DNA of 64,000 nt from Adineta vaga (GCA_021613535.1 CP075494.1:1922001-1986000), one strand, 5' to 3'; counted from the stretch's first letter, positions 28,701 through 62,271 are shown. Notes: generated by a model from the letters alone, not told the origin. Made by a program: numbers and translations.

Positions 28701-31700
28701 TTGATGTTAATTTCGACTTATATGTAGCAGATTCTTACAACAATCGAATTCAACTCTTTCGATTAGGAAAAATGAATGGAATTACAGTAGCGGGCATTTC
28801 ATCTTCAAATGTTACAATTTCACTCGCACGTCCAACTGGAGTTGTCCTGGATGCTGATGGATATCTTTTCATCGTCGAAAAAAACAATCATCGTATCATT
28901 GGATCAGGACCAAATGGATTTCGATGTATCGTTGGATGCATTGGTGGGGGAAGTTTATCGAATCAGTTATTGTATCCAACGACACTTAGTTTTGATAGTG
29001 GTGGAAATATATTTGTTACGGATACCAACAATCATCGTATTCAGAAATTTATTCTGTTGAATAATAGTCGCGGTAAGTAATTCAAGCTTTAATTATAATT
29101 GACTTTGCCCGTTCTAGTTCATTATATTAATACGGAAATAATTTATTATTTCTGAGTTATTTGTGACCATTTATTTAGAAGCGAGACCATAGTATTTATT
29201 TGAAATTTATAATTTTCTTTCTAGTTCCTTCATATAATCAACCGAAATTTTGCCCAGATGCAACATGGAATCCAAATGCAACTACTTTCGCTAACAGAAC
29301 TAACAATACTATCGGAACAAGCCCTTATGGCATATTTGTTTCAACCAATAACACAATTTATGTTGCGGATCGATCCAACTATCGAATTCGAATATGGTCG
29401 AATGGAAGTATTACTCCAGCACAATCAATCTATGGAACCAATATGTATGCATTCTCACTTTATGTCACAACAAATGGAGATATTTACATTGATAATGTAT
29501 TGCGTAATGCAAGAGTAGATAAACGATCAATGTTGACAAATACCAGTGTTCCTGTCATGTATATTAATACGATGTGTTATGGTCTTTTTGTCGATCTTAC
29601 TGATACTCTCTATTGTTCGATGTATAGTTCTCATCAAGTTGTGAAAAGATGGATATACGACATGTCATCCACTGTGACGATTGTTGCTGGTACAGGTTCG
29701 GCGGGCAGTGGTTCATCTATGCTTTATAATCCTTGGGGAATCTTTGTTGGTGTTAATTTCGACTTATATGTAGCAGATTCTTACAACAATCGAATTCAAC
29801 TCTTTCGATTGGGACAAATCAATGGAATTACAGTAGCCGGAAGGTTATCTCCAAAGGTTACAATTTCACTCGCACGTCCAACTGGAGTTGCGCTTGATGC
29901 TGATGGATATCTTTTCATCGTCGAACAAAACAATCATCGTATCATTGGATCAGGTCCAAATGGATTTCGATGTATCGTTGGATGCACTGGTCGGGGAAGT
30001 TTATCGAATCAGTTATATTATCCAACGACACTTAGTTTTGATAGTAATGGAAACATATTTGTTACGGATACCAGCAATAATCGCATTCAGAAATTTGATT
30101 TATCAATAAATTCATGTAGTAAGTAAATCTTCGATATTATATTCATTGACAATCCAATGACACTGCTTAGAATTGACTAATCTTTCTATTTCAAAACTTC
30201 TCACTAAAATATTTAATTCATTTCAGATCAAAGTGTACCAACTGCAATTCAAACGACAACAACTACTACTATAAAAACACTGGTATTTGTAAAAGGTTTG
30301 TTGGCAATGCATATTTGATAGAGAAAATCATTTATAGAGATCGTAGCAATGACAGTATTAGAAAAAAAAGCTTTTTTTTAGAGAATTTTTCTTGTTTAGA
30401 AGAAGTTTCGATTTCGAAAAAACAAATTTCGGTTTCACAAAGGTTTTATTTTAAACATTCAAAATTTATAAATAAAAGACTAAAAGTACATATTCTATAG
30501 TATGTCTTCCACCTTCAATAACATTGATTCCAAATACTGATACAATATCATCACCAACTCAATTTCGTCGTAGTGAAGATTTCACAATAGTTTCACATAT
30601 TGAATTAAATTGTAATAGTACATCATCAACAATCACTCGATGGATAATCAAAAAATGTAATCCATCCTGTTTACAAGTAATTCCATTTGATTCAAATATA
30701 ATGACAACATTTAGTGAATTATATATTCCATCACGAATATTATCTTATGGTCTATATGAAATGAAATTAACTGTCACTATGATGAATACAACAAATGTCT
30801 CTTCATCTTCAGCCATTTATGTTCAAATCACTCCATCAGATATAACAGCAAATTTAGTTCGATATGGTACATCAATAATTACACGTGGTAATCAACAAGA
30901 TCTTCAATTAGATCCAGGAAGTTATTCCACTGATGGTGATGGAAATATATTTAATGCTTCCGTAAATTTTCTATTAAAGATTTAAGTTTTTCAATTATCT
31001 TCTTTGTTTTATAGAATTGGAAATATAAATATTATTGTCGAATTTATGGTTTATCAACATTTCCAAATTTATATGGTTCATTATTGACAATTGATGATAT
31101 GAGAAATGATTTAACAAATCCATCTTGTTTATCATTAAATCGAACGGGTTGGAGATTTGATAATTCTTTTCATTCATCATTTACAATACTTTCTGGTTCT
31201 CTTCAATACAATCGAACATATCAATTTATGGTACAAATGGAGAGTCGCCAGAATTCTTCTCTTCAAGCTACAGGTTATGTTCTTGTTGAAGTTGAAAATA
31301 CTCGTCCAAATATGATCTTGATCGGGTATTTTCTTATTTCTTTTGCTTTTTTAAATTTTAAATTCGTGATTTTAGTTGTGTTATATGGACATTATGTCAA
31401 CCAAAGATGGAATTTCAACGTGTTAATCCAACAACTCAAGTAGCTTTATTTTCAGTTTGTGATGGAAGTTGTGTCAATATTCAAAATATCAAATGGAAAG
31501 TTTATTTTAGTGCATTCAATTCATCTTCAAATTTAACTCAATGGATATTATTTAATCAAACAATTATTTATCAAAATATATGGTTTTTTGGTAAATAAAT
31601 TGTATTTATTTTATTAGAAGAGATGATTTTATTAAATATTATAGGAATGAGTACGACTAATTTCACTGCTACAAATCAATTATTTTTATCGAATCCTGAG

Positions 31701-34700
31701 ATTGAATTATGGCGATTTGAAGTTATTTATACTTTTTCAAATCAAACAAGTATTAGTTCATTAAATTTTCGTATTAATCAACCACCTTCGGATGGTTCGT
31801 GTTTTATTGATCCTTTAAATGGAACTGCAAGTAGTTTATTTACAGTTTCATGCATAAATTATTTTGATACAGATGGAATTAAAGATTATACTGTCTATGG
31901 TATATTGAAAACTTTTCAAATAACCAAGATAAATCATTTTCTTTTCTTTTTATTAGGTTGGACGCATGATACAACTAAAAGAATGATTATTTCTTTTTCA
32001 AATCTACCAACATTCCAAATGTATTTACCAATTGGTGATAATCAAACATCATTACTCTATTTAACTGTTCATATTCGTGATCAATTAGATTGTGTTACGG
32101 AATTTAATCTTTCATCAGTTACTGTACTTCCAGATTTAACAATAATTAATGATCTAATACATTATACTCAACATCCATCTGAGAATATTGGTACAAATCC
32201 AATTATACAATTACTTGCAAGTAAAAATCAAAATTTAGTTGGACAAGTTATGACTTTAGTGGCACAACAGTTCAATGAAATGAGTAATGAAAATATTGAT
32301 AAAGCCATTTCAAGTAAATCTTTAAAATAAATTATTTAGAATTGATTCATTTTATTCTTTTTGTTATATTATAGATGGTATTTCAGTTACAAGTATTTCA
32401 GTATCATCATTATTAACTGAAAGTACACAACAGGTAATTCTATATTTAATATCAAATATTTTTAGTCTAGTTTTCTAATATTATAGTCATCATTACCATT
32501 GAATCAATCAGTATTAGATGAATTTAATAAAGAATTAAATTCTCGTGCTTCAACTCGAGATTATCTTATTACATTTATTACAGAACTTCCTATAACAACA
32601 TCAAATAGTATTAAACTACAAGCATCATCATTAGCTCAATTTACAAAAGCAACAAATGAATTAACACGAAATACTTTAGTATAATTCAATTCTGTTTAAT
32701 TTAATCTTTTGTAAATTTATTTTCTTTTCTTTTAGACAATTGCTTCTAATCGTTGTTATCAATTAGCTTTAGCTTTAAATTCAATGAAAACTAAAATTTC
32801 ATTTGAAGATGTTCAACTTGCATCAACTGATCTTCTTCAATGTGCTGCTAATGTATTAAATGTAAGTTATCTCTTTCATAAATCTATATTAAAAATATCT
32901 TCATTGAATCCTATAGGCTGTCAATGGACCATTACAAGAAAGAACAACTATTCTTGATTTAGATTCAATTCGAACTACAGAATTTCCAAAAGATTATGAT
33001 ACTGATCTCGAAACACAATGGGCTAATCCACGTATAATAACATTTCATTTTTCTAATCATTTAATATGTTATAATATTTAGATTTATTTTCTGATGATGA
33101 TGATTCTTCATTGAAAACAATAGAAAAGAATCGAATAATTTATTATCAAAAAGAATTAGCAAATCAAATCAAATCTGAAATGAATAAATTAATTTCATTA
33201 TTAACTTCAACATTGAATATTCATTTAAATATTGGACAAGATTTTCATATTGAAACATCACAAGTATTGATGACATTAGAAACAAAATCTATTCAGTCAC
33301 TTTCAAATCAATTTACAAAAACAATTGGAAATGCACAAGTTCAACTTCCTTCTCATTTCAATTCTTATCTTTCTACGTATGATAAAATATCTATTCGAGT
33401 GAGTTAATCAATAGATTCTTTGTAATGAATTTTTTTTGAGAAATGATCTTTTAATATATATAGTCAATGATGGAACCATTAGCACCATTTGGAAATTCGA
33501 AAACAACACCGAATACAAATTTATCAAGATCAATCTCATTTTCCATTTTAGATGACAATCAAACTGAAATATCGATTCGAACAATAACGAATCAGTCTAT
33601 TGAAATCATTATTCCTCGTGATCCTAATCGGATCATTCCAACAATGGTATTACGAAATGTTACAATAACAATAAGCAATTCAACTCCTCATCGTCTTATC
33701 TTTGATTTACATTATTTAAATTTAACAAAATTACTTCCTATTTCAATTCATTGGGAAATTCAACCATTAAATACAAGTTTAGCTTATTTATTTATCTATC
33801 GATTTGATCAAATACCACAATTGAATAGTTCAATCAAACAGATCGATGGATGGACCCTCTTTTGTCCCGATAATTTAACAAATGAAGGTATTTATACCTA
33901 TTATATTGATAATCAACGAACAATTGGTCATCAATCAGTCATTTATGGTTTACGAGAATTGAATGCAACTGAAATCGATCAACTTTGTTCAAATTTCTCA
34001 TCGATTACTAATCCTCCAATTAGCAATGAACCAATTAATTTCACATCCAACTATTTCTTGAGAATCTATACTTCTGGTTGTTATTATCTCAATGAAAATC
34101 AACAATGGAAATCTGATGGATTATTAGTTGGTCCATTGACTAATCATAATCAAACACAATGTTATTCTACACATTTGACAACATTTGCAGGTGGTTTTGC
34201 TATTTTACCTGAATCAATCGATTGGAATTATGTATTTGCAAATGCTGATTTTATGAAGAATAAAACGATCTATTTGACAGTTATTTGTGTATCAATTATC
34301 TATATTATTCTGATACTGTATTCTCGTTATTATGATAAGAAAGATGTGGAAAAATTAGGTGTGACAATTTTACCTGATAATCATAAAGAAGATGATTATT
34401 TCTATCAAATTATTGTATTTACAGGTCAAAGAACAAACGCAGGAACAAAATCTAATGTAAGATATTTTTTAAAAAAAGGACATTATTTCGAATATATCTA
34501 TTATCTTCTAGGTTCATTTTGTAATACATGGTGATAAGAATGATACACAGATTCGAACGTTTCTGGATCCTCATCGACAAATTCTTCAACAAGGTGGTGT
34601 TGATGCATTTCTTATGAGTGTTCCAAAATCATTGGGATTATTGAATTGTATTCGTATTTGGCATGATAATAGTGGAAAAGGTTCATCATCATCATGGTTT

Positions 34701-37678
34701 TTGAAATATTTAATCATTCGTGATTTACAAACAATGGAAAAATATTATTTTACTTGTCAACGATGGTTTGCCGTAGAAAAAGATGATGGAAAAATTGAAC
34801 GTATTTTACCTGTTGCAGGCGAATTAGAGAAACGTCAATTTTCATTTGTATTAACTAAACGAACTTATCATAGTATTTCAGATGGTCATCTTTGGTTTTC
34901 AATCTTTTCTCGACCACCATCACAACAATTTACACGTGTTCAACGATGTACATGTTGTTTTGTTCTTTTATTTGTTTCAATGTTTTTGAACATCATGTAT
35001 TATGATTTATCAAATGAAACAAAATCAAACAATTCAGCCAATTTATCCTTTGGTTCACTTTACATTTCTCCTCAACAAGTATGTAAAACTGATTTGTTTT
35101 TTCCTATTGTTTTTTATTTCTATTCCAAGATAATTATTGGTATTATTGTGGAATTATTTGCACTAATTCCAAGTTTGTTACTTATTCAATTATTTCGTCG
35201 TCTTCGTCCTCATCGAAAACATCAATCACCTATTCGACAAGCTCTCTGTAAAGTCAAACCAAATATAGAAAATCATGTCGATCAACAGAAATCATCATTA
35301 ACTTTTCCGTGGTGGTGTATTTTTATTGCATATGGATTATGTTTTGTCTTTGTTGCTCTTTCAATTCTATTTATTATTGCTCGTGGTATTGAATTTGGTG
35401 ATGCAAAAACTCAAAAATGGTTAGCATCTATCTTGAGTAGCTTCTTTTCTTCGATTCTTCTTACTCAACCATTAAAAGTAATGTTCTAAGATTTTCAAAT
35501 CTAAAGACACTTATGTACATATCTCTATTTCAAGATTGTGTCATTGGCAATAATATTTGCATGTTTTTGTCGAGAATCAAATGATGATAAAGAAGCCAAT
35601 GAACTGTTGGATGATAATGATATTGGTTTAGAAGTTGATGAAGAATATCTTCATACAATTAAGGTTTATTTCTTAGATGTTTTATAATTTCATAGAGAAT
35701 AAATATTTTCTAGAATGAATCTTTAATTCCTTATCGATCTCCAAATCGTGCTAATCGTTTAAATGCAACTGAAGTGATTCATCTTCGTCAACAACGTTTG
35801 AAACAAATTCAAATGTGGTCAATTATTCACGAAATATTACTTTATTTCTGTTTTCTCTCATTTCTTTATGTAATCATTTATTCAAATCGTGATTCCAATG
35901 CTTTTTTCAAAGTTAATCATCTTAGAAAATATTTTCTTAATTCAAAACAAATTGATTTTGATTATACAAAAGTTTGTTTCTGTTTAAAAAGCGAATTCTT
36001 TAAACTAAATAAATATTATTTAGATTTCAACAATTAATCAATATTGGAATTGGTTAGAGAATCATTTTATCTTCAATCTTCGTGCACAACAATGGTATAA
36101 TGGTGAATCACCTCGAAATCTAAGCGGTTTTATGGATGATAAAACTAATCGATTGATTGGTTGGGCAACAATGAGACAATTACGAGTTCGAACTAGTTTA
36201 TGTCATCAACAAACTTTCATTTCTTCTACATGTCAACATGATTATAGTTATTCAAATGAAGATAAAAATTCTTATGAACCCGGATGGATAAATACAACAT
36301 CAACTAATTATAATATATTTATTCAAAATGCATTTAAATATCAATCTAATAATACAAATTATAGAAGTGGTGGTTATATTTATGAATTTCGTGGTCGTCT
36401 TTCTGATCTTCGAAGTAATCTTTCACAACTTCATTCATTAAGTTGGATTGATAATCAAACTCGAGCTATTATTGTTCAATTAACTCTATATAATCCAAAT
36501 GTTCAATTATTTACTGCAGTTACTTTTCTTGCTGAATTTCTTTCATCAAGTGGAGTTTTTACTTCTGCTCGTTTCGAACCCATTAGTTTCTATGGTAATT
36601 TTCATATGAAAAAAAAACTTCTTATTCTTTCTTTTGTTTTTTAGCATTTACATCAATTTATCAATTAGTTTGTACGATTATTTATATGTTAATGATCTTC
36701 TATTTCATGTGGATTGAATTACGATCATTATTTGAATTAAAATGGAAATATTTTATTCAATTTTGGTCGTTTATTCAACTTGGTATTATTATTTGTTCAT
36801 GGACAAGTCTTGGAATTTATATTTGGCGTTATCAAGAATATCAACGAATTGGAAAATTATTCTCTGAAACGAATGGATATGTTTATATTGATTTACAATT
36901 AATTTCCTATATTAATGATCTATTAACTTATTTATTGAGTTTTTGTTGTTTTTTTGGTACAATTCAATTAATTAAATTATGTCGTTTTAATCAACGTTTT
37001 TGTTTATTTATTTATACACTTCAATTATCAGCAAAAGAATTATTATCATTTTCATTTATGTTCTCTATTGTATTTATGTCATTTATATGTCTTTTCTATT
37101 TCTTATTTATTTCCAAATTACCTGAATGTTCAAGTTTATTTGGAACAGCACAAATGTTATTTGAAATGACCTTAATGAAATTTGATGCACATCAATTAAG
37201 TAATTCAGCAGCATTTCTTGGTCCATTTTGTTTTAGTTTATTTATTCTATTTGTTGTATTTATTTGTATGAGTATGTTTTTATCAATTATTGGGGATAAT
37301 TTTCGTCGTTCAAGAGACAATTTCAATGATAAAAGGAATGAAATATTTTCATTTATGTTTCAAACATTTCAACAATGGACAGGTAATAAATATAGAGAAG
37401 AATTGAATTTAATATTAAAATAACAAATGTTTAGGTTGGAAAATAGTAACAGAAGAGAAAATTCAAGTTGAAAGAGATGAGCAAACGCATGAAGAATATT
37501 ATGATTGGATTGAACAATTTCCAGAGAAAATGGATCAATTATTAAATGCATTGGATCAGGTATACTTAGTTTTCTAATATTTGATTATAGATTTGCTTTG
37601 TCTTTTTTTTTGTATTATAAATAGATCTATATGGATCAAAAGACGGAAAAATCAATTGTGCAAGAAACGAAATTTTAA
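25748..37678 (+). CDS. Polycystin-1-like (PKD1L/REJ family) receptor-channel with four N-terminal NHL beta-propellers
   Basis: Signal exon 25748-25811; NHL exons 25912-26799, 26946-27839, 28179-29072, 29225-30118; Thr-rich linkers; REJ region from 30501; GPS motif C..W.SDG..C..HL|T (34172-34180); PLAT (YQIIVFTG..AGT.S, IRIWHDNSG..SW.L); further TM segments and polycystin channel domain; stop at 37678. Confidence 0.9.
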
Positions 37679-42225: not shown

Positions 42226-42628
42226 TCTGTTTTCAATAATAAAAATGAATAAAAATCATTATTTTAACATCAAGTTTAGATGAAAAATAGAAAATGCATA
42301 TTATTATTTGTTCCTATTTAAACGTTAGTAATGCATTTTCTAGATAAAAAATATCATACGCAATAAATTAACATATGTTCGAATGACGTTATGATAAAGC
42401 TATTCCGAGGTTCAGTGAGAAAAGAATATTTGAGTAACATTTGTTTTTTGTATATTGTGAAGAAAAAGAGAAAGAGATGAAAAACATTTGAACATATGTA
42501 GATTTAAATGAAACCATGTTTTTAATACCTACTTCCTTTTCTCCTTTCACTCAAATATATTCAGTTAATAGTTTAGTTTTCAAAACTCTTTGAAAAAGAA
42601 GAATCTAATAAAATTAATTTTAGAAATA

Positions 42629-45600
42629 ATGATTTTAATTGAGAACATCAAATTATATTTCATTTTATCAATTATTGGTCAATTATCAGGTCTTTCATTC
42701 AATCAACCAAAATTTTGCTCTGAAGCAATTTGGAATCAGAATGGTACTACTTTTATTGGAAAAAATATACTTAATTCATCAGCATCTTATGTATTTATTA
42801 CAGCCTATAATTCAATTTATGTTCTAAGTCAAGAACCATCTTTCATTTTTATCTGGTTAAACCATTCTATTTATCCAACTATGACGATATCAGACAACTT
42901 GAAAAGGCCACAATCAATTTTTGTTCAGAATGAGAATGAAATCTATATTGATAAAGGTGATTTCAATCGTAAAATCGAAAAATGGATATTAAATACAAAT
43001 ATTAGTATTCCTGTTATGGATGTTCCATCATCATGTTTTGGTTTGTTTATTGATATTAATAACAATCTATACTGTTCATTGAATGCTCATAATCAAATAG
43101 TCAAAACTTGGCTAGGTGATAATTTGTTAACGCCAGTTGTCGTAGCTGGAAATGGATCTCGTGGTTCGACATCGGATACTTTCAATGGTCCATGTGGAAT
43201 TTATGTTGATAGTAATTTTAATCTATATGTAGCTGATTCTGATAATGCTCGTATTCAATTATTTCGACGAGGACAATTATATGGAATTACAGTTGCAGGA
43301 AGTAAATCAATAAATATTACTGTTACTCTTAAACAGCCGACTGGAATCATTCTTGATCACGACGGTTATTTATATATTGTTGATCGTAGTGGTAGGCGCA
43401 TTATTCGAGGAGGAGCAAATGGTTATCGATGTATACTTGGATGTCTTGTTGCTAATACAGATTTAAACGGAATACTGTCAACAGATTATTTAGCTTTTGA
43501 TAGTTATGGAAATATTTATGTTAGTGATACAATTAATGGTCGAATTCAAAAATTTGCTTATCTCAAAAAATCATGTGGTAAGTGTCAAAGCATGAGAAAT
43601 GATCATTTACCAATATTTTGTATTTTTAGATCGAATTACTGCAAATATTTCTTCAAACACAACATTACGAAGTATGTAAAGTTTGTGTAGAACCATCTTG
43701 AGGGTGTGGGTGTGGGCGAAGAAGATATACCCATATCAACACCCTCAAGATCATGGTGTATATCTTGTGCTCATCGTTTGCACCAACTCAATTTTATTTC
43801 TTTTAGATCTTTCATTCAATCAACCAAAATTTTGTCCAACGGCAGCATGGACCTCATTTGGAGTTACTTTTTCAGAAATAAATCAATCACCATCTTATAT
43901 ATTTATTACAGCTAATAATTCAGTTTACCTTCTGAGTGAAGCATCATCGCTCCTTTACATTTGGTTGAATCAGTCTGCTAAACCAACAATAAGAATATCA
44001 GACAACTTGAGAAGCCCACAATCAATTTTTGTTCAGAATGAGAATGAAATCTATATTGATAAAGGTGATTTTAATCGTAAAATCGAAAAATGGATATTAA
44101 ATACAAATATTAGTATTCCTGTTATGGATGTTCCATCCTCATGTTATGGTCTTTTCATTGATATTAATAACAATTTATATTGTTCATTGAATGCTCATAA
44201 TCAAATAGTCAAAACTTGGCTAGGTGATAATTTGTTAACGCCAGTTGTCGTAGCTGGAAGTGGATCTCGTGGTTCGACATCGGATACTTTCAATGGTCCA
44301 TGTGGAATTTATGTTGATAGTAATTTTAATCTATATGTAGCTGATTCTGTTAATGCTCGTATTCAATTATTTCGACGAGGACAATTATATGGAATTACAG
44401 TTGCTGGAAGTAAATCAATAAATTTTACAACTATTCTCGAACATCCAATGGGTATTATTCTCGATCAGGATGGCTATTTATATATTTCTGATCAAGGTGA
44501 TTATCATACTCGTATTGTTCGAGGAGGACCAAATGGTTATCGATGTATAATTGGATGTCTCGATATTGGTCCAGATTCTAACAAATTAGGTGGACCAGGT
44601 CTAATGGCTTTTGATAGTTATGGAAACATTTACGTTACTGATACGAGTTATGTGAGGATTCAAAAATTTATTTTTTCAAAAGCTTCATGTGATCGTAAGT
44701 GTTAAATCATGAGAAATGAACAATATACTAATACATTGTATTTTAAGATCAAATTACTACAAATATTTCTTCAGTTACAATATCACGAAGTATGTATAGT
44801 TTTTATATAATTATCTTCCAAAATATTTTACGGATGAACGAACAGGTTCGATGACTAGGTAGTGACCGTTTATATTCTCGATTTGCTCGTATTCATTACA
44901 CATCGATAAGATAGATATGTGTATGCAACAACCTTGAGAAACGTTTTTTTAGATCTTTCATACAATCAACCAAAATTCTGTCCAGCCGCAACTTGGAATT
45001 CCTATGGAATTACTTTTGCCGACAAAAATATTCTTAATGGAACTCCATATTTTATGTTTATAACAACCAATAATTCCATCTATGTTGTTAATCCATCAGT
45101 ATCTCGAATTTACATTTGGTTAAACGATTCTATAACACCAACTACAACAATATCAGACAACTTATCATCTCCCAGATCAGTTTTTGTACAAAATGAGAAT
45201 GAAATCTATATTGATAAAGGTAACCGTAATTATCTAGTGGTAAAATGGATATTAAATAAAAATATTAGTGTTCCTATTATGAATACTTATGGATCATGTT
45301 ATGGTCTTTTCATTGATATTAATAAAAATTTATACTGCTCAATATACAAACATCATATGGTTGTGAAAAATTGGTTAGATGATGATGATACAAGATTGAT
45401 TACTGTAGCTGGAAATGGATCTCAAGGTTCGACTTTGGACGCATTGAATTCTCCATGTGGAATTTTTGTTGATATTAATTTGAATTTATATGTAGCTGAT
45501 TCTTTAAACCATCGTATTCAAATGTTTTCACGAGGACATTTGCATGGCATAACAATTGCTGGAAGTACATCAGTTAATACTACTATAGGTCTTAATCATC

Positions 45601-46032
45601 CAAGTGGAATTGCTTTCGACGGCGATGATTATTTATATATCGTTGATAGTTATAATAATCGTATTGTTCGAGGAAAATCAAATAACTTTCGTTGTATACT
45701 TGGATGTGTTTCTCCTGGTTCAGAATTGCACAAATTCAAGAGACCAAGTCATATGACTTTTGATAGTTATGGAAATATTTATGTTGTTGATACAGACAAT
45801 TATCGAATACAAAAATTTACTTATTTAAAAAAATCATGTGGTATGTAGGGTAGAACTGTAAAAGTAGAAAAAATTTACATGATAATCTTTAAAATAAGAG
45901 TTTGTATTTAGTTTTTATTCTCTTTAAGAATCCTTCATCATGACAACAACTACACCTGTATTATCACGTTCAACGAAGATTCTAGTTGGATATTCAACGC
46001 TGTGTTTAATGCTTTTCATACTTTATATGTAA
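42629..46032 (+). CDS. Triple-NHL beta-propeller surface protein, probably GPI-anchored
   Basis: Signal peptide MILIENIKLYFILSIIGQLSG; exons 42629-43577, 43630-43671, 43807-44694, 44748-44789, 44953-45840, 45929-46032; ends ...SRSTKILVGYSTLCLMLFILYM* (hydrophobic tail, no cytoplasmic domain). Confidence 0.85.
43695..43751. repeat. Telomere-repeat-armed hairpin element (intronic)
   Basis: ATCTTGAGGGTGTGGGTGTGGG-CGAAGAAGATATA-CCCATATCAACACCCTCAAGAT. Confidence 0.85.
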
Positions 46033-50483: not shown

Positions 50484-51440
50484 CTTATTCCGAAAAGGAA
50501 TAGTTTTGAATAATCATAGTAAGATATTCCTCTCATATCTTTTACCTTGCAGAACATTTTTCTTCTGAATTTTATCCTTGTCATTTGTTGGATTTTTCTC
50601 AGCAAATATCTTACGACATCCTACGTATATATACATCACATTCTAATGTGTCATCAGAAATATAATTTCTAAAATAATATATTATAGAATAATTCTTCTT
50701 ATCTCTACTATGATTCACATTCAATTTCAAATTTGAATCGATTTTGATAATTATATTGTACATGATCATGTTCAATTAGATACTGTTCGTTTCAATCAAA
50801 ACCAATAATGAAATACCTCATAATCTTGATGAAAAACGTGTTCTTGATGCTTATCAATTAAATATAGAAAAAAATCATATATAAAACAACATTCCTTCCA
50901 TTTAAAATTAGTACCAAATCTAATTCATCAATTATCGATATTAAACAAATTCTAAAGGACATGATTTCTATTTCTATTTTGATTTTTAATACAACATCAT
51001 CTAATCAATCAAAAGCATTACAATAAACCTTCAATGAATGCGACTGTTCATAGATTTTCTGTTCGAACTTTTTTCTCAAGATGTCCCGTTACAATCAAGA
51101 ATCATTCGAATAAAAAGACAAACTGACTGAATTCGTTCCTAAACAACAATAACTGTCGACTAATTTCATTAATTAACAGTTTTTTTTTTAAATTATAATT
51201 TCTCGCATTTTTTACTGATGAATAAAATATATAAAAACAGATGCTAGTTAGTTTTTGCTGCCAACACCTATGGAATCTTCTTCTTCTTCTTCTTTGCTTT
51301 TTGAATGCATTATTTGTTCCATATGTTTCAATATATATAAATCATATAGATATAAAAGTGATAGATAATAATGGTAAATGCATTAATGCAATTCTCAAGA
51401 TTAAGTTATATGAAATGTTTTAGTAATGATTAATTTTCAG

Positions 51441-54400
51441 AAAATTCGAAATTTACCAAGTCATTTAATCGAACTAATAAAAAATTATAATCTTTTTCAA
51501 TCAAATCCACCATCAACAGATGAACATGATCTTCGAAATCAACGAATTTCAACAAGATTATTTCTCATCCTTTTAACTTTTTCATTGATTATTCTTCTTA
51601 TCTACAATGCATTGATTACTATTACAAAAACCGATATTAAAAGAAATCCAACATATACTGAATATCGACGTTTACATTCATTGTATTCAAATACATTAAC
51701 ATGTCCATGTAAACATATTTCCATCGATTATAAAGAAATTCTTCAAGTTAATTACACATTACATGAAATATGTTCATCAGATTTTGTAACACAAAAATGG
51801 TTTCAATATCTTATTGAATCTTATGATAAAAATAATATACATTTATATGATTTTCGATGGACAGGTTCATTCACATTTCAAGCATTAAATGCATTGTGTG
51901 AATTAATAAATGAAATAATCATGGATAGTTTTTTACAACTTCAGTCAAAACGGTATATTAGTACAGCAATTATATCATTGGATACATTTGAAAAAGAATT
52001 ACAACTGTTTACTAATCTATTTCGATCGACAATAACAACGAATTTCCTTGATTTATTTAAGATGATTCGAAGTATAATTTCAATAAATGCATTTTATTCG
52101 GAAAGAGATACAAATTATCAAATTGAAATAGATTTTTTTGCGCTAACTGTAACGCTTAGCGAAACCGTTTATGGTAAATGCAATTGTAAACTTTCATCGA
52201 AATGTTTATATCCAACTTCGTTCTATAAATATCCTGCTACTAGACCATTATTTACAATCAAAGGTCTTTATCAAGGCTGTTATATCGTTGAGGCACTTAT
52301 GGAATCGACTCTCGAATGTTTTTATAATCAAACTTGTCTTAGTAAAGTTCAATCATACATAAACTCTTCATTAACAATGAATTTAACAGTTCTTCAAATA
52401 TCAAATCAAAGCCATTACCAAGTTAATTCAACTATCAAACAACTTCTCAATAATCTTTTGATTAACAAATGGGAATCATCTTATAAACATCAGAATTATT
52501 ATAATCAGTGTCAACCTATTGAATGTATTTATAGTTATAAAACCAGAAATAACAAAATTTATATTATCACTGCAACAGCTGGACTCATTGGTGGTTTATT
52601 AACTGTATTGAAAATTGTTGTACTAATTTTAGTTAAATTTATACGAAGAAAAAAACAGCTAAAAAAGTCCACGAATGGTGAGAAAAATCAAGATAAAAAC
52701 GACTTTTCTAACTATACCTTTTTATTCAGATATACAAGAGAAGCGATCATGTTCTCATTTGATAAGAAAACTAATCGAACTAATAAAAAATTATAATCTT
52801 TTTCAATCAAATCCACCATCAACAGATGAACATGATCTTCGAAATCAACGAATTTCAACAAGATTATTTCTCATCCTTTTAACTTTTTCATTGATTATTC
52901 TTCTTATCTACAATGCATTGATTACTATTACAAAAACCGATATTAAAAGAAATCCAACATATACTGAATATCGACGTTTACATTCATTGTATTCAAATAC
53001 ATTAACATGTCCATGTAAACATATTTCCATCGATTATAAAGAAATTCTTCAAGTTAATTACACATTACATGAAATATGTTCATCAGATTTTATAACACAA
53101 AAATGGTTTCAATATCTTATTGATTCTTATTATTTACAAAAAACGGATCGCGATTTTTTAAAAGTTGTTTTATCACCATTCAAAACAATGCATTCTCTAT
53201 GTGAGTTAATAAATGAAACAATTCTAAATAATTATGCTCAGTTTCAATCAATTCAATACATTAGCACATTAGTAACATCAAGAGACACATTTGAAACACA
53301 ATTACAAATCTTTATAAATGAATTTCGATCGGCAACGACAACTAATTTTAATCGTTCATTAAATCTTATGAAAAGTATAACTGATATAAATGTTTTATAT
53401 TCTATACAAAGTGAGGCATACTATTTGACGAAGTCATTTGCCGATGATAAAATCAGTTCGGGACCAATGGTTTTTTACCCTTCTTATTCGTGTGCTAAAT
53501 CATCAAAATATGTCAAACCAATAAGTTTTAGACATGATGGATTAATTCCCATTCCTGGTTTATATCAAGGATGCGATGTAATCGAAGCATTATTGAAATC
53601 TACTCTTGAATGTTTGTATAATCAAACATGTTCTCATCAATTTTTCTTTCGACATGGAAATAAAAATTCATTAAAAATAAGAATTCTTAATTCAACGAAT
53701 ACAAAATATCGAATTAATTCAACAATGAAAGAACTTATCGATGAATTAATGATTCAAACATGGACATCAACTATAAAACATGAAAATTATTATAATTATT
53801 GTCAACCGATCGAATGCATTTATAGTTATCAAAGTAAAAATGAGAAACTTTATGTTGTTACAGCATCATTTGGACTTATCGGTGGTTTAATAACTGTATT
53901 TAAATTTGTTATACCAATTGTAGTTCGATTTCTTCGAAAAAAACTACGAAAACAAATTGAAACTACTGGTAAGAAGAAAATTATATATTATATTTTACTT
54001 ATTTATATTTCAGAAACCAATATAATTCAATTGAAATCTTCATTATTACAAAGATTATTTCATTTTCTCATAACTTTCAATTTATTTCCATCAATTCCAC
54101 CATCTACCAATCAAATTCATCTTGAAGATCAACGAACTTCAACAAGATTATTTCTTGCATTATTAATTTTCTCTTTAGTTATTCTTTCTATATACAATGT
54201 TTTAATCATAACTGCTCAACCGGTTTCAATCAAAACACCAACATATACTGAATATCAACGTTTATATTCATTGTATTCAAATACATTAACATGTCCATGT
54301 AAACATATTTCAATTGATTACAAAGAAATCCTTCAAATTGATTATACATTACATCAACTATGTTCATCACATTTTATTAAACAATATTGGATTGATCATC

Positions 54401-55293
54401 TTTCTCATACAGCTTTATTGATATCAATAGATATACGAGATTTTCGCATGTCAGCTAACAATTTTTTTCATGCCTTAAGTATAATATGTGAATCAATAAA
54501 TAAAACAATTGCTGATAATTATTCACAATTTTTATTAAATCAATATCTAAGTATATCAATAACATCAGAAGAAGTTATTCATCAACAGATTCACAATTTT
54601 ATTCAACATTTTCGAACAAAGATAACAAATAATTTTGTTTACATCATTCAAATGGTTGAATATACAATACATACAAATGCTTTATATTCAAGATTAAATA
54701 CAAACTATGAATTATATTTATTGAAATCAAAATATAAAATTTATTCAAATGTCACATATTATGATAATTGTCGATGTGATTTATCATTGAAATGTCATAT
54801 GAAATATCCACTTTATGATACTTTTCGCAAAACTATTTCAACAAGTTTTGTACCGGGTTTATATTATGGTTGTTATTTAATTGAAGGACTTCTTCTATCA
54901 AATCTTCATTGTTTTTTTAATCAAACATGTTTGAATCACATAGATTTATCAATTATTTCTGAATCATTACCCTTTATTAAATTGCTGAACCCATTCCTTC
55001 AAAGTAATTATGATATTAATTCAACTATAAAAGAATTAATCAATAAATTAATGATTGAAAAATGGAAACCAAGTATCAAATATAAAAATTATTATAATCG
55101 ATGTCAACCTATTCAATGTACCTATATTTATCAGACGAAATATAAACTTATTTATATTGTAACAGTATTAATTGGACTTCTAGGTGGTTTAACAACTGTA
55201 TTGAAAATAATTATACCTAAATTAATATTAATTATTAGATGGATTATTACAAAATGGAAAAATAGAATACTTTATCCGGAAATTTCAAATTAA
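51441..55293 (+). CDS. Membrane protein of three tandem TM-(Cys-rich ectodomain)-TM units, unknown function; true start not identified
   Basis: Each unit STRLF..(TM)..LTCPC..CSS.F...GLY.GC...L.C..NQTC...YYN.CQP..C.Y...GL.GGL.TV(TM); units separated by phase-1 introns 52678-52729 and 53969-54013. Confidence 0.8.
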
Positions 55294-55613
55294 CAAGTCA
55301 ATTTTTATGAATATAATAAGACTATAGCGAGAATACAAACTTTACATATGTTGAAAAACGATGTAATATTGACATTATTATCATCAACATCAATATTTTC
55401 GTAGTATCGACTTTGATTAGAAACTCTGCGGTTCTTAAAATCTCATCCTCACCCTTAATCTCGAATAAATGTATGATTTTGAGAAAAAAAGATGTCAATA
55501 AATATCGTAGAATGACAAAGCTCTTTTTTATTACTTCTATCCTTCTGTTGATATTTTTTCTATATAATTGTATTTTAACTAGATTTATTCACATAGGATT
55601 AATCATATCCACC

Positions 55614-57133
55614 ATGAATAATAACAGAATTAACGTTTCTAATGTAATTTTTATTAAAAAATAATTCTAAGAAATCAAGTATTTATTTATTGTATTTTAT
55701 TTTAGTCCCAATCAATCGATACAAATATAACACGAACAAGTACATTGTAAGTAGAATTTTTACATATCATCAAGAAATTGATGAAAAAAATCTTGTCATT
55801 TTGTTAGATGTACATATTTTCAACGAAGAAAAAGACTCTTTTTCATATTAATGGGCATTTTTATCATTATTTTAATCATCATTCTTCTTGTGATGATTTT
55901 GCTTCAAAGAAAAAAAACTGTTGTAAATCATACATTACCAACAGCAATGGAAACATCAGAAAAATCAACAGCAAAAATTCATACAACAGAAGCCATGCTA
56001 ACAGAATTGACAACACAAGAAAATCAGATTATAACAACAGAAGGTAGAGTTAACATTAAATGGATATATCATGTATTTATTTTTCCCTATTCGTAACAGA
56101 TTGTAGCAGTTTATTTTTGAATTCTGATGCTTATGAAACTTCAGAAATCATGGCTATAGCTATTAAAGATATAAATGATGACGACAGACCAGATATTGTT
56201 GTTGTCGTACCTATAGAATACCAAATGAAACTTCTGTTAAACAACGGTGATGGTACATTTATGTCGCCGATTCCTTACAGGACTTCTTTCTTTCCTGTAG
56301 CAGTAGAAATAGATGACATGAATAATGACAATAAACCTGATATAGTTGTTGCTCATCTTGGTTCACATACGTTAACTATTTTTTATAATAATGGCAATGG
56401 CACATTTGTGGATCAAGTACTTTATCCTGTTGGATTATCAGCAACGTATTTGGTGATAGCAGATATAAATAATGATAAAAAACTCGATATTATCGTTGGT
56501 TTTCTCCGTTCAAATAAAATCACGATTTTATACAATATGGGCAATAAAACATTTCGAAATGAAAATATTCACAGCTCAATCCCTATTTTCGAACAATTAG
56601 TTGTAGTTGATATAAACAATGATGAAAGATTTGATATCATTTTTTGTCATTACGTTTCTCGAACAATCAATATACTATTCGGCGATGTTAATAACACATT
56701 TAATACTCGAAAAAGGTATGTATTCAATAAAAATGTAACAGCAATAACAATAGCTGATGTGAATAATGATATATTGAAAGATTTAATTATTGCATATAGT
56801 GATGATGATTATTGCATTACTGTTTATATTAACATGGGTAATGAAGAATTTGTTGAAGAAGATCAATATTCAATAGGTCTATATATAGACATACTACTAG
56901 TAATTGATTTAAATAAAGATAATAGAACCGATATTGGTTTTTTCAATTCTGAGTCAACTAATATCTTTATTCTTTTTAATAATGGCTTTAACAAATTTAC
57001 AAACCAAATTATATGTGAATATTTTTATGTTGCATCGTCGCTAGATGTCATTGATCTCAATTACGATAATAAACTCGATATGGTAATAAAAAACAAAGAT
57101 GAACGTTTTATCAATATTTTCTTACAACATTAA
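55614..57133 (+). CDS. Type II membrane protein with FG-GAP/VCBS beta-propeller ectodomain
   Basis: Exons 55614-55643, 55706-55746, 55808-56043 (TM + Thr-rich stalk), 56100-57133 (seven D[IM]NND.K.D repeats). Confidence 0.85.
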
Positions 57134-57693
57134 CAATGACTTTCAATGTAGATAAAAAATCCTTGTCTCAGTATTGTTGTCTTGCTTTTATTCAAAAATA
57201 AATACATTAATAGAAATATAGTATGAAAGAAAACATATTGGACATCTGTAATATACGATGTAATTCAATACGTATTTCGTATGATAAAAAAATATATGTC
57301 ATTCGAAAATAAGTTTAACAATATAAGTATTTATGTAGTATTATTATGAAATAATATATCTTCTTCTATCTTTCTTCAAAATTTCATTAATAAAGTCTTT
57401 GAGGACTGTAAGACATGCATACATTGTCCTACCTGTTTTTTTTAATGACAAGTTTTTAATTTACATTAAACTTATACCTATCATACTGTGTTATGTAGTT
57501 TTCCTTCAAATATTCTTTGTTCTTTCTGTCAGTATATAGTGACGTCATGATTTTTTCAGTCGATGACGATCCGTGTGCTACATATACGAGTGATGCTAGC
57601 AGAGAGAGTGATCTCTATTACGGATGAAAGTTACGTTGCAAATTATGGTCATATACCTCAATCTCTCTCAAAGAACGAACTCTAGTTTTAGTT

Positions 57694-57884
57694 TTTAGAT
57701 ACTTTTTTACCGAAGAAGTTTTAAACTTGATTACTAATCAAACAAAGATCTATGGTAGAGGAAAGAAATCAAATAACAATCAGAAAAAAAGCACTAATTG
57801 AAAGGATGTCAGCAAAAAAGGAAACTAAGTCATTTCTCGGTTTGATTATTCTATAGAGTATCAATCACTTGCCACGTATGAAAA
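57694..57884 (+). mobile_element. piggyBac-like transposase remnant
   Basis: Translates FRYFFTEEVLNLITNQTKIY...*KDVS..ETKSFLGLIIL*SINHLPRMK, matching the piggyBac N-terminal core; stops and a frameshift. Confidence 0.65.
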
Positions 57885-58368
57885 TTGTTAGAAAATCGTT
57901 TTCTGCAAATATTTTATATAATACCTCTAGCGAATAGCTCATCAGCATCAGAACGAGCATCTAAAAGTTCCATAAAACTTCTACAATTGGTCGCTATAGT
58001 ATAAATAGACGAAAACATGATAAAAAAAAGTTATTGTTTTTTATTTTATAATTTAGGCAACGTTTGCCACAATTACTTTAGCATCGAAAACATTTCGAAA
58101 GGGTCATTTTGTTACGATTCCGCATGTTTCGAGAATAATTTCAAAGCAGTTTAATCAATAAATATCTATTGAAAAACGTATAGTGTGTATGTCTGAACTA
58201 TATTCCTTCATCTAAAAATTCAGTTTTATTCACTTGTGTATAGATTTATTATATGAACATACTTCAAAACATCTGCTTAGATATTTATCTTTGAAAGAAG
58301 AACCAAGCTTATAATTTGTTATGTAAAAGAAAAAGAAATTTTTTTCATTTTCTTTTATTTTTATAATT

Positions 58369-60862
58369 ATGGTCGATAATAGAATCCGAGTATCTGATGT
58401 AATTTATCTTTGATCATTGTCTATCTTCTAGTTATTTGATTATTTATTTTAGTCTCAAATTGATCAATTAGTTTCATCATATACAACAGATATTCAATCA
58501 CAGTCGATGTAACATGTGAATTTCTTTGAGATATATTTTCTTTTTCTTTTATATATGTAGATATGAATATTGTGCAAGAAAATGGAAGAAGCTTTTATTC
58601 ATTTTTCTTCTATCATTAAGCATAATTATAATAGGTGTTATATCAGCAGTAATAGTAGCAAAACAAAACTCGGTTATCTTAACAACTATGATAGCAACAA
58701 CGAAAACTACTCTGACACCGCTATCGATTAATACAACAACTTATACAGAAGGTAATATTTGCGGACTTTTGTCCTTGTCTCATTGCATTAACAGATATAG
58801 AACAATTGAGATTGAGAACGCGTTTTCTACAAAAAAAAGTATCAAACAAGCTTCGAAGACAAGTATTATATATAGGGTGTTTCCATCGTACTTGTGACAC
58901 GTTTACACCGAACCTCACCAAATCGTTTGAAACTTTCAGGGGTTGTGTAATAATCATTTCTGAGACTTTTTCACTCTTGGACGAAAGTCATGCCACCTCT
59001 TGCTGAGGAACTGCAGCCCAAATACCATGTACTCTCCGGGACGATTTTTTCAAGCAATTTATCCGTATAAACGACGTAGTTTTGCACCACTCTATGCTAT
59101 AGAAATTCTGATGATAGATTCGGATCCCTCGTCACCAAGTCTATCAAAATCACTATTTTTAAAAAAATTTTCGAAGGGGGGGTTGCTAGAAATCCTATTA
59201 TACAGGTGGGATTTCCAGACACAAAAACTCGATTAATAGAGAACTCTGGACATAGTGAAGTGTCACGTTTGATAGAGGAACAAAAGTTCTATCGAAACAT
59301 ATATTTGCCGCCGGGGGGGAGTGAGTTTTTCCCGAAGTAGGATTTTTGACGGAAACAAATTTATGATGTCAGAAAAAACTATGTCAAGGTCGTTGAAAAT
59401 CCTACTTCGGGAAAAACTCACTCCCCCCCGGCGGCAAATATATGTTTCGATAGAACTTTTGTTCCTCTATCAAACGTGACACTTCACTATGTCCAGAGTT
59501 CTCTATTAATCGAGTTTTTGTGTCTGGAAATCCCACCTGTATAATAGGATTTCTAGCAACCCCCCCTTCGAAAATTTTTTTAAAAATAGTGATTTTGATA
59601 GACTTGGTGACGAGGGATCCGAATCTATCATCAGAATTTCTATAGCATAGAGTGGTGCAAAACTACGTCGTTTATACGGATAAATTGCTTGAAAAAATCG
59701 TCCCGGAGAGTACATGGTATTTGGGCTGCAGTTCCTCAGCAAGAGGTGGCATGACTTTCGTCCAAGAGTGAAAAAGTCTTAGAAATGGTTATTACACAAG
59801 TCCTGAAAGTTTCAAACGATTTGAGGAATGTTGTGTATATCGTGTCACAAGTACCATGGAAACACCCATAGTTATTGTCAGTTAAAAAATATATTCTAGT
59901 TTATTTTGTATTTAGAATGGATACAAATAGAAACATTAAAGATAAAGACTAATTTTCATACCGCAACTATCTTAAATAATGGAAAAGTCTTAATTACTGA
60001 TGTAAAAGAACACAGTGCAGACATCAGATGTTTATTATATGATTCATTAACTGATCAATGGACACGGACTGGACGGTTGACTTTTCTAGGGTTGCATCAT
60101 ACTGCATCGTTATTAAATAATGGTTTAGTATTGATCACAGGTGGAGTTTCGTCGGGAAGGCATTATTCTTATGTTGAATTATATAATGCATCGACAAATA
60201 AATGGACAGGTGTAAGAAATATGGTGTCTACACGATCTAAACATATAGCAACCGTATTAAAAGATGGAAAGGTTTTGGTAACAGGTGGAATTGATTTCTT
60301 TCTTACTTCTACTCGCACTGCTGAATTGTATGATCCACTGACAGATATATGGAAATCCACACAAGATATGACTTACCCTCGTTATTCTCACAGAGCATCT
60401 TTGTTACAAAATGGAAAAATCTTACTTACTGGCGGAAATGACTTAAAAACTGCTAATGAATTGTATGATCCAACACAAGATAAATGGATCAAAGCAGGTG
60501 AAATGAAGGTTCCACGTCGATATCACACAGCTACTGTTCTAACTAATGGAAAAGTCTTAGTTATTGGTGGTCGTGATGAAGCTAATTATGTGTGGAACGA
60601 TGGTGAATTGTATGATCCGTCAACCAATGAATGGACTGCAATAAGTAACATGTCTTGTCCACGATATGGTCATACATCGACTCTATTAAGTAATGGATCA
60701 GTCTTGGTCATTGGTGGATGTCCCGATAAAGCTTCAAATAGTGCTGAACTTTATGATCCATTAACAAATGCTTGGTTATACGCTAGTAATACGCAGATAG
60801 ATCATTGTCGGCATACAGTATCTCTTTTACAAAATAGAAAAATCTTGATTATTAGTGGATAA
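58369..60862 (+). CDS. Type II membrane protein with Kelch beta-propeller ectodomain
   Basis: Exons 58369-58398, 58453-58508, 58561-58751 (TM + Thr-rich stalk), 59916-60862 (HTAT.L.NGKVL..GG...ELYDP...W repeats). Confidence 0.85.
58873..59868. mobile_element. ~1-kb palindromic MITE (Tc1/mariner-like ends) in the Kelch gene intron
   Basis: TA|TAGGGTGTTTCCAT...ATGGAAACACCCA|TA; ~470-bp inverted arms, ~49-bp spacer 59347-59395; identical 78-aa ORFs on both strands. Confidence 0.9.
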
Positions 60863-61088
60863 GTACATTTGGCAATGATTTTTATGGAAAAATTAAAACT
60901 TTATTTAAAAAAAAAAGAATTTGATCTAAGCATGACGCATATGATAGTCATGTTTGTATTACATTAAAATGCAAATTATTAGTAATCACCATAATTCATA
61001 TTTGCATTTATCAAAAACATATCATTCGTTAAAAACGTAGAGTACCTTAGACTAGGATTTGAGTTTTTTTATAAATGGGTTTGCCTAA

Positions 61089-61712
61089 AGGTTAGACCAA
61101 GTTAGATCAACTTCAGACAAAGATGCAGCTCGACGAGCTCTATCAAATGGTGTATTTTTACTTTTCCTAAAAGACCTTTCCCCAAGGGGGAAAAAGCAGA
61201 CTTCTGTACTTCTCCGTACTTCCTTGTACTTCATAACACTTATACTGGCATATATTAAAATTTTCATCCCAAAAAACAGAACAAAACTGACCTGTCACTG
61301 GAACTATTAAAACTTTTATTCCCAATAACAGAACACTTTTCTTCTGTGTTTGGGATCAAATGACGAAGATAAAATGTACTTCTTTTGTACTTCCTTGTAC
61401 TTCTGTACTTCTGAAGTATGAAGTCCTGCTTTTTCCCCCTTGCCTTTCCTACTAGTAAAAAACCTCGAAAAACTTCAGTGAAACCTGTAGGGATTCGTCT
61501 ATAGGTTAGACCAAGCGAAGAAACTTTCAGGGGAGATAGGACTCGTCGAGCTCTATCGATTGAATACCTTGGATGCTATCTTTGAACGTACCGTAGTGGC
61601 AAAAATCACTGAATAGTAACTCATTACTTATGAATTTACTATATCCAAAAACTATTGAGTTAGAGGTTAGACCAAAATAGAACTCAATGAGATCTATCGA
61701 TTGAATACCTTA
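61089..61712. repeat. Degenerate DNA-transposon internal repeats hosting a nested MITE
   Basis: AGGTTAGACCAA x3 (~61089, 61503, 61664), each followed by a CTCG.CGAGCTCTATC-like motif. Confidence 0.55.
61183..61442. mobile_element. MITE with 17-bp TIR and 8-bp TSD (P-element/hAT-type)
   Basis: CAAGGGGGAAAAAGCAG...CTGCTTTTTCCCCCTTG; flanks CCTTTCCC / CCTTTCCT; GTACTT subterminal repeats. Confidence 0.85.
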
Positions 61713-62271
61713 GTTGTTATATTCCAGTAACTAAAGATAGTAAAATGTACTAATTACTGAATTTTCCACTAGTACAGTTTTAAAATGACTTTTTTAATGT
61801 ACGGAAAGATGAGACTTAAGTGGACGAAGATTAGAACATGATACAATGCGATAAGTTCTTTTGAGAGAATGTCTTTTCGGTTTCATCCGTATATATAGTG
61901 TACTGAAAATGAGTCACAGCTCTTATGCTGAAGGAATGCTGTGTATGATTAATGAAAAAGCATTCTTTACAATAATTTTCTGTACGTTGAAAGCGATTCT
62001 TTTTGTCTCATAATGCTTTATCATTCTAATGTATTGACTTCAATCCGATTGCCCTTCGGTATCGATTTGATTTGAGGAAGTAGATATAAATTTGTTTGAT
62101 AAATAAAATAAAGCAGCTTTTAGTACAAATGATGTTACACAGTTATGATGTATATTTTTGGACATAAAGGCATGTTATTCGATAGTATCGGAAGATTCTT
62201 TATCAATAGACCCTTCAGATGTATTAAATGTATCAACAGAGAAGTGATGATAAAGATGAACATCTTGCTTA

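Follow-up and report, generated by a model that had tools for sequence, protein, structure and literature searches.

Two neighbouring genes of Adineta vaga join unrelated propeller domains to a related, predicted membrane anchor

The window analysed here is a 64,000-nucleotide stretch of the bdelloid Adineta vaga (C5:1,922,001-1,986,000 in a 100.8 Mb, six-contig genome) and lies in a distal chromosome region. Such regions are reported to contain many foreign genes and transposons and to be much rearranged (PMC8494291). Two adjacent genes, here called A and B, each consist of three exons that encode a predicted membrane anchor and a last exon that encodes a propeller (the head). Their features are given below in coordinates of the window.

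55614-55643, plus strand: gene A exon 1, 30 nt (10 codons), phase 0; opens the predicted cytoplasmic tail
55706-55746, plus strand: gene A exon 2, 41 nt, ending in phase 2
55808-56043, plus strand: gene A exon 3, 236 nt; basic patch, transmembrane segment (TM), Ser/Thr-rich stalk and phase-1 donor
about 55836-55904, plus strand: predicted TM of gene A, 23 residues (residues 34-56), mean hydropathy 3.6
56100-57133, plus strand: gene A exon 4, 1034 nt; seven-bladed FG-GAP/VCBS propeller
57197-57202, plus strand: AATAAA, candidate poly(A) signal of gene A (consensus match only)
58369-58398, plus strand: gene B exon 1, 30 nt (10 codons), phase 0
58453-58508, plus strand: gene B exon 2, 56 nt, ending in phase 2; a second in-frame donor, after 58502, would also fit
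58561-58751, plus strand: gene B exon 3, 191 nt; basic patch, TM, Thr-rich stalk and phase-1 donor
about 58592-58660, plus strand: predicted TM of gene B, 23 residues from residue 40, mean hydropathy 3.0
58873-59869, no strand assigned: palindromic, non-autonomous terminal inverted repeat (TIR) element within the third intron of gene B, 1 kb, with 433-nt arms that are 99% complementary
59916-60862, plus strand: gene B exon 4, 947 nt; bacterial-type Kelch propeller with six full blades and a partial seventh

When joined, the exons of gene A give a single open frame of 446 amino acids with GT..AG junctions and intron phases of 0, 2 and 1. Pfam assigns the last exon to FG-GAP_3 (PF13517; E 5e-42, 142.7 bits against a cut-off of 26.9), and its sequence motifs include seven DxNxD-type calcium-binding loops and five N-glycosylation sequons. 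AlphaFold predicts that this head folds as a propeller by itself (pLDDT 92.7, pTM 0.91), and structure comparison matches the model to seven-bladed propellers, including CRTAC1 and the fungal lectin PVL. With repeated DxNxDG-type loops and a closed seven-bladed propeller in the model, the head is an FG-GAP/VCBS propeller. It shares the seven blades and cation-binding DxDxDG-type loops with PVL, CRTAC1 and integrin alpha, but identity to these is only 11-19%. Integrin alpha is, in addition, a type I protein with leg domains. Gene A was rejected as an integrin alpha: its protein ends right after the propeller, has its TM at the N terminus and lacks both thigh and calf domains and a C-terminal TM with GFFKR.

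The exons of gene B likewise form a single open frame, of 407 amino acids, with the same type of junctions and the same phases (0/2/1). Its last exon matches Kelch_1 (PF01344; E 2e-40, 136.4 bits) and is modelled as a propeller by itself (pLDDT 93.1); with GG...Y...W repeats in a modelled propeller, it is a Kelch propeller. Animal BTB-Kelch proteins (KLHL3, KEAP1) also carry Kelch repeats, but those of gene B are of bacterial style, are predicted to be extracellular and score far higher to bacterial proteins. Assignment to the BTB-Kelch (KLHL) class was rejected: there is no BTB or BACK domain and the N terminus is a 90-residue anchor module. Gene B is probably slightly truncated, since an in-frame stop about 10 codons ahead of the motif that matches the last strand of its relatives cuts the last propeller strand. 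With this early stop, a degenerate first blade and a long branch (1.21), it has a partly decayed look. The ends of the TIR element in its third intron are, we assume, mariner-like, and the arms have 24 matches in the genome (about 12 elements) that are 72-98% identical. Neither the stop nor the element appeared in the initial annotation of this stretch.

Chromosome 3 holds a 73% identical copy of this neighbourhood, in which the FG-GAP gene is intact, the Kelch gene is broken (a pseudogene), the TIR element is missing and the gene order differs from that of the window. A homoeologous origin of the copy was rejected: the homoeologous pairs are 1-4, 2-5 and 3-6 (PMC8494291). Chromosomes 3 and 5 are thus not homoeologues, and the copy is a segmental duplicate.

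The initial annotation had described the two genes as sharing a three-exon anchor beneath unrelated propellers, and the open exon models, their GT..AG junctions and the separate Pfam assignments bear this out. As it had read them, exon 1 is 30 nt long and in phase 0 in both genes, with the peptides that it gave; exon 2 starts with SQ and ends in phase 2 in both; and exon 3 ends in both with ACA GAA G followed by the donor gt, in phase 1. Compared with shuffled sequences, the direct similarity of A and B is modest overall. It is significant in exon 1 (protein z 4.8, DNA z 4.5) and the TM gives z 3.3; exon 2 (z 0.0) and the residues preceding the TM (z -0.3) show no significant similarity at the protein level. 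The exon-1 pattern has three matches in the 100.8 Mb genome, and its reversed control none. Homology of the two anchors is concluded from exon 1, the common phases and family members that bridge them. Splicing and expression of both genes are predicted. Among sequencing runs recorded as RNA, none contains this stretch. Contigs of four RNA runs compared with 55500-58870 showed no splice joint; apart from one unspliced, DNA-like contig that spans gene A's first introns, they gave only short matches to paralogues.

Related anchors were found by genome searches with exon 3 followed by inspection of the loci, using exon-by-exon or database-protein queries; joined exons served for frame checks, and concatenated per-exon alignments for the tree. 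About 33 A. vaga loci were identified, with Kelch (16), NHL (12), FG-GAP (2) and discoidin-like (1) heads or with none in view (2). These counts are lower bounds, with three weaker candidates and about 15 weaker profile matches outside them. At 21 loci the anchor could be modelled as three exons, with phases of 0 and 2, and seven more models begin in exon 2; 56 nt, as in gene B, is a frequent exon-2 length. Atlas features class the discoidin-like head as F5/8 type C (0.96); it has no Pfam match. Heads had been described as intronless; this holds for A and B, where the head is a single last exon, and not for four Kelch members in which it appears to be split by an intron. In the stretch examined, three anchors (L056, L069 and L074) have no head. 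Many copies are broken (L027, L029, L030, L065 and L069). For most of the loci the nearest chromosome end is no more than about 5 Mb away, and most members are dispersed single genes.

The exon-3 profile also retrieves proteins of A. steineri and A. ricciae. Public models with 0/2/1 phases (A. vaga UJR17662.1, A. steineri P0257 and P0272, A. ricciae P0262) carry NHL or discoidin-like heads. The 30-nt, phase-0 first exon of gene A recurs in L008, L009 and the A. ricciae model P0254; the last has 30- and 41-nt exons as in gene A, ends in TTEG and is followed by an NHL exon 2.7 kb downstream. Outside Adineta no members were seen, in searches that are weak for distant genomes. Several public gene models contain the anchor only, and the family may have gone unremarked so far because annotation often overlooks the micro-exons or splits them.

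Type II anchors generally combine a basic patch, a hydrophobic stretch and a Thr-rich stalk, and phase 1 is usual for extracellular modules. It could thus be argued that these anchors merely look alike by convergence, the more so as A and B show no significant similarity in exon 2 and ahead of the TM, as the exon-3 profile also picks up unrelated type II proteins of fungal appearance, and as the anchors of two FG-GAP proteins, P0030 and P0044, have other exon layouts. Against this, exons 1 and 2 match in sequence and length across head types although they lay outside the search query. For example, the NHL gene L009 was found through exon 3 alone, yet its exons 1 and 2 also match those of gene A (DNA z 6.7 and 6.4; protein z 3.3 for exon 2). 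The motif CEYFR, moreover, falls exactly at the phase-2 acceptor in all four head types and in three species. For the core group convergence is thus largely refuted by the sequence comparisons, and as a general account it is very improbable. It may explain peripheral members such as L019, L021 and L062. Six other candidates, L015 (an aminopeptidase N), L017, L020, L024, L025 and L033, were rejected from the family as generic TM matches.

Reuse of a homologous anchor with unrelated heads, first proposed from genes A and B, now extends to four head types and three species. The initial annotation had also placed the NHL cassettes of the window in the same modular system. Eight NHL exons, chosen by motif, have starts that were read as phase-1 acceptors, but searches of the 64-kb window with the exon-1 pattern and exon 3 found no third anchor. 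The acceptor phase is therefore common to the cassettes and the anchor is not: the NHL exons of the window share a shuffling-friendly phase, not the anchor module.

The history of anchors and heads was read from a tree of 31 anchors, built from a short (198 nt) and low-complexity alignment. The FG-GAP pair groups with the NHL gene L009 (support 97/86), and a single clade of NHL anchors is rejected (p-AU 0.0015). L009 is the nearest anchor after L008 with exons 1-2 alone and with exon 3 alone, each partition taken separately giving a p-AU of only about 0.07. The anchor of gene B falls in an all-Kelch clade (96/98), and sisterhood of the A and B anchors, as expected from tandem duplication of one anchor, is rejected (p-AU 0.033). 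The tree of Kelch heads reproduces the two main clades of Kelch anchors (100/99 and 100/100), and a single origin of all Kelch-bearing anchors is compatible with the data (p-AU 0.32). Heads require six changes on the anchor tree, compared with 14 when shuffled; the minimum, including the unknown class, is four. The four head types need at least three replacements, to which the unconstrained tree would add a few. A change from NHL to FG-GAP would be the parsimonious direction on this unrooted tree. Agreement between the anchor and Kelch trees indicates that swaps were few and old.

This pattern bears on the proposal of the initial annotation that the locus is an active exon-swap system with interchangeable heads. 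Anchors and heads would then be mixed by alternative, cross- or trans-splicing (for example, from 56043 to 59916) or by frequent programmed exchange of DNA. Since all donors and acceptors are in phase 1, every combination of anchor and head would stay in frame, and headless anchors do exist. However, heads cluster strongly on the anchor tree, Kelch heads and anchors co-diverge, and genes A and B belong to different sub-lineages of anchors. Both genes start with an ATG exon of their own, and gene A is followed by a candidate poly(A) signal. No recombination signals or repeats are found at the A and B junctions, and neither the altered order in the chromosome 3 copy nor the dispersal of most members as single genes fits such a system. 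At the level of the genome, separate genes whose anchors and heads co-diverge also count against an alternative-cassette locus of the Dscam, protocadherin or VLR type. We consider live mixing very improbable. As read from the trees, the mechanism would be ordinary phase-1 exon shuffling, rare and old, followed by co-inheritance, with no sign of live swapping.

The heads had been described as bacterial in style, and the named non-rotifer matches among the best 120 for each head are bacterial. The Kelch head gives 342 bits to a protein of Acidobacteria and 142 to human KLHL3, and the FG-GAP head 187 bits to a protein on a prokaryote-type contig of 67% GC and 24 to CRTAC1; the animal side of this comparison consists of solved structures only, and the Kelch tree has no animal outgroup. 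Some unnamed best matches are probably rotifer DNA in metagenomes (for example, on a contig of 35% GC). A word-based search, uninformative at 40% identity, gave no bacterial locus for the Kelch exon. A bacterial, horizontal origin of the heads is likely.

Hydropathy, charge, stalk composition, sequons and calcium loops point to a type II topology with the head outside the cell, in agreement with the type II anchor originally proposed. In both genes a single hydrophobic N-terminal segment is long enough for an uncleaved anchor. Across the family the TM is 21-27 residues long and starts at residue 23-51, stalks are Ser/Thr-rich, and the N-terminal side of the TM is at least as positive as the C-terminal side in 30 of 31 anchors. 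The margins are small, with +4 against +3 in gene A and +3 against +2 in gene B.

The loops that precede the His and follow the Gly-Gly of each Kelch repeat form the top face of the propeller, and in proteins of the KLHL3/KEAP1 type the top-face loops are the binding site. In four close Kelch pairs of the family, pN in these loops is 0.277, 0.203, 0.243 and 0.289, compared with a whole-head pS of 0.087, 0.072, 0.119 and 0.112. The loops thus change at about 2-3 times the synonymous rate, and the rest of the head (pN 0.04-0.07) below it. The excess is significant by Fisher tests (p 6e-8 to 4e-4), in which the loop classes derive from propeller anatomy, were fixed after the pairwise alignments had been seen, and are applied to four pairs that are not all independent. 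With loop-only pS as the reference, two of the tests lose strength (p 0.07 and 0.10). In the FG-GAP pair the loop excess is mild (pN 0.36, pS 0.25-0.28). Excess amino-acid change on the putative binding face is therefore seen among Kelch paralogues and is weaker in the FG-GAP pair.

The same history could also have produced proteins with another job, such as adhesion or structural proteins of the secretory pathway or gut surface, or simply decaying duplicates whose loop variation reflects relaxed constraint. Whole-head dN/dS is near 1 in close pairs (0.84-1.31), many copies are broken, the RNA-run contigs over 55500-58870 lack a splice joint, and no signalling motif could be recognised in the short tail, so that a role in signalling is no more likely than one in capture or adhesion. 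Against relaxation, the changes fall mostly in the top-face loops, the core changes at less than the synonymous rate, and frames of 330 codons are still open; we regard this alternative as unlikely. The best reading of the sequences is that the family consists of diversifying, predicted surface binding proteins, for which microbial glycans or proteins would be the likeliest ligands. F5/8 type C domains often bind carbohydrate. VCBS-like propellers are typically tied to carbohydrate recognition (PMC9218822).

Kelch, NHL and FG-GAP repeat genes are known to have expanded in A. vaga, and roles in defence, signalling and cell communication have been suggested for them (PMC3846280). These are the same repeat families, and the passage on them mentions no shared anchor, head replacement or loop diversification. 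Our search of a largely open-access literature found no description of the shared anchor.

Two known systems offer comparisons. Animals shuffle extracellular modules as exons at phase-1 introns. Here too a phase-1 intron links a domain-sized exon with a membrane module and the new architectures then duplicate, but whole bacterial-type propellers occupy a terminal exon in place of symmetrical 1-1 modules and the constant part is the N-terminal anchor. Type II C-type-lectin-like receptors (Dectin-1, NKG2, Ly49, DC-SIGN) are clustered, fast-evolving paralogues in which separate exons encode a short cytoplasmic tail, a signal anchor, a stalk and a binding head at the C terminus, an arrangement that the Adineta genes resemble. 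Unlike them, the Adineta family has no C-type lectin domain, places four unrelated head folds on one anchor and shows neither ITAM/ITIM motifs nor a charged TM residue. By analogy, it would work like these receptor clusters without being a member of them.

We therefore favour, with a probability of roughly two in three, the reading that genes A and B belong to a bdelloid family, spanning at least Adineta, of single-pass type II membrane proteins in which an old anchor module received a few head swaps and then duplicated to give diversifying, predicted receptors. The module would comprise a cytoplasmic tail of about 35 residues, a signal anchor that stays uncleaved and a stalk that could be O-glycosylated, encoded by three exons and ending at a phase-1 intron. 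In a few events, recombination inside this intron or insertion of a head exon may have put a new phase-1 domain exon (NHL, Kelch, FG-GAP or discoidin-like, probably of bacterial origin) behind the anchor. Each fusion would then have been multiplied by duplication in distal chromosome regions, anchor and head being inherited together. The stalk would hold the propeller outside the cell, where the top-face loops would diversify, most likely to bind varied glycans or proteins on microbial or food surfaces. A more specific version, in which bacterial propellers were repeatedly domesticated onto one landing-pad anchor as a bdelloid innate recognition repertoire with loops under ligand-driven selection, is offered tentatively.

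These observations bear on the recognition of microbes by bdelloids and on the way in which horizontally acquired DNA turns into a functioning animal gene. A foreign domain that lands behind a phase-1 donor already in place would gain a promoter, a start, membrane targeting and display, which would be a concrete route to its domestication. The mechanism, exon shuffling plus duplication, is an ordinary one; the interest of the family lies in this route and in a candidate receptor repertoire that can be tested.

Type II anchors with FG-GAP heads were also found in A. ricciae and A. steineri (loci L077 and L078). Their exon layouts differ (phases 0/1 and 2/1/1), which suggests either intron loss or that FG-GAP was anchored independently a second time. 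Three anchors (L056, L069 and L074) lack a head exon within the examined sequence. For two of them, L056 and L069, exon 3, which encodes the membrane segment and stalk, is followed by other sequence, apparently mobile elements. One locus (L065, C1:15,281,847) is a broken copy: its TM exon continues directly into an NHL head at a point midway through that head, a fusion that apparently arose by deletion.

The window contains the following additional features:

891-5123, - strand: four tandem NHL exons
25900-37423, + strand: four NHL propeller exons, with ORFs resembling REJ, GPS, PLAT and polycystin channel segments immediately 3'
42590-45848, + strand: three tandem NHL exons
51426-55293, + strand: Cys-rich two-TM unit in three tandem copies
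58873-59869, intronic (intron 3 of the Kelch-headed gene): near-perfectly palindromic TIR element of about 1 kb
61077-61723, 3' of the Kelch-headed gene: short direct and inverted repeats

Young copies of the TIR element (92-98% identity) occur on contigs C1, C4 and C5, and it also has longer relatives with an arm spacing of 700 nt or 2.6 kb. The short repeats are probably leftovers of a further small element. The Cys-rich unit gave no Pfam match; it has relatives on C3 near 1,494,000-1,498,000.

Among the exons checked in the two tandem NHL runs, all start at apparent phase-1 acceptors. The other four NHL exons, together with the REJ-, GPS-, PLAT- and channel-like ORFs, possibly constitute a single polycystin-1-like gene with an NHL ectodomain.
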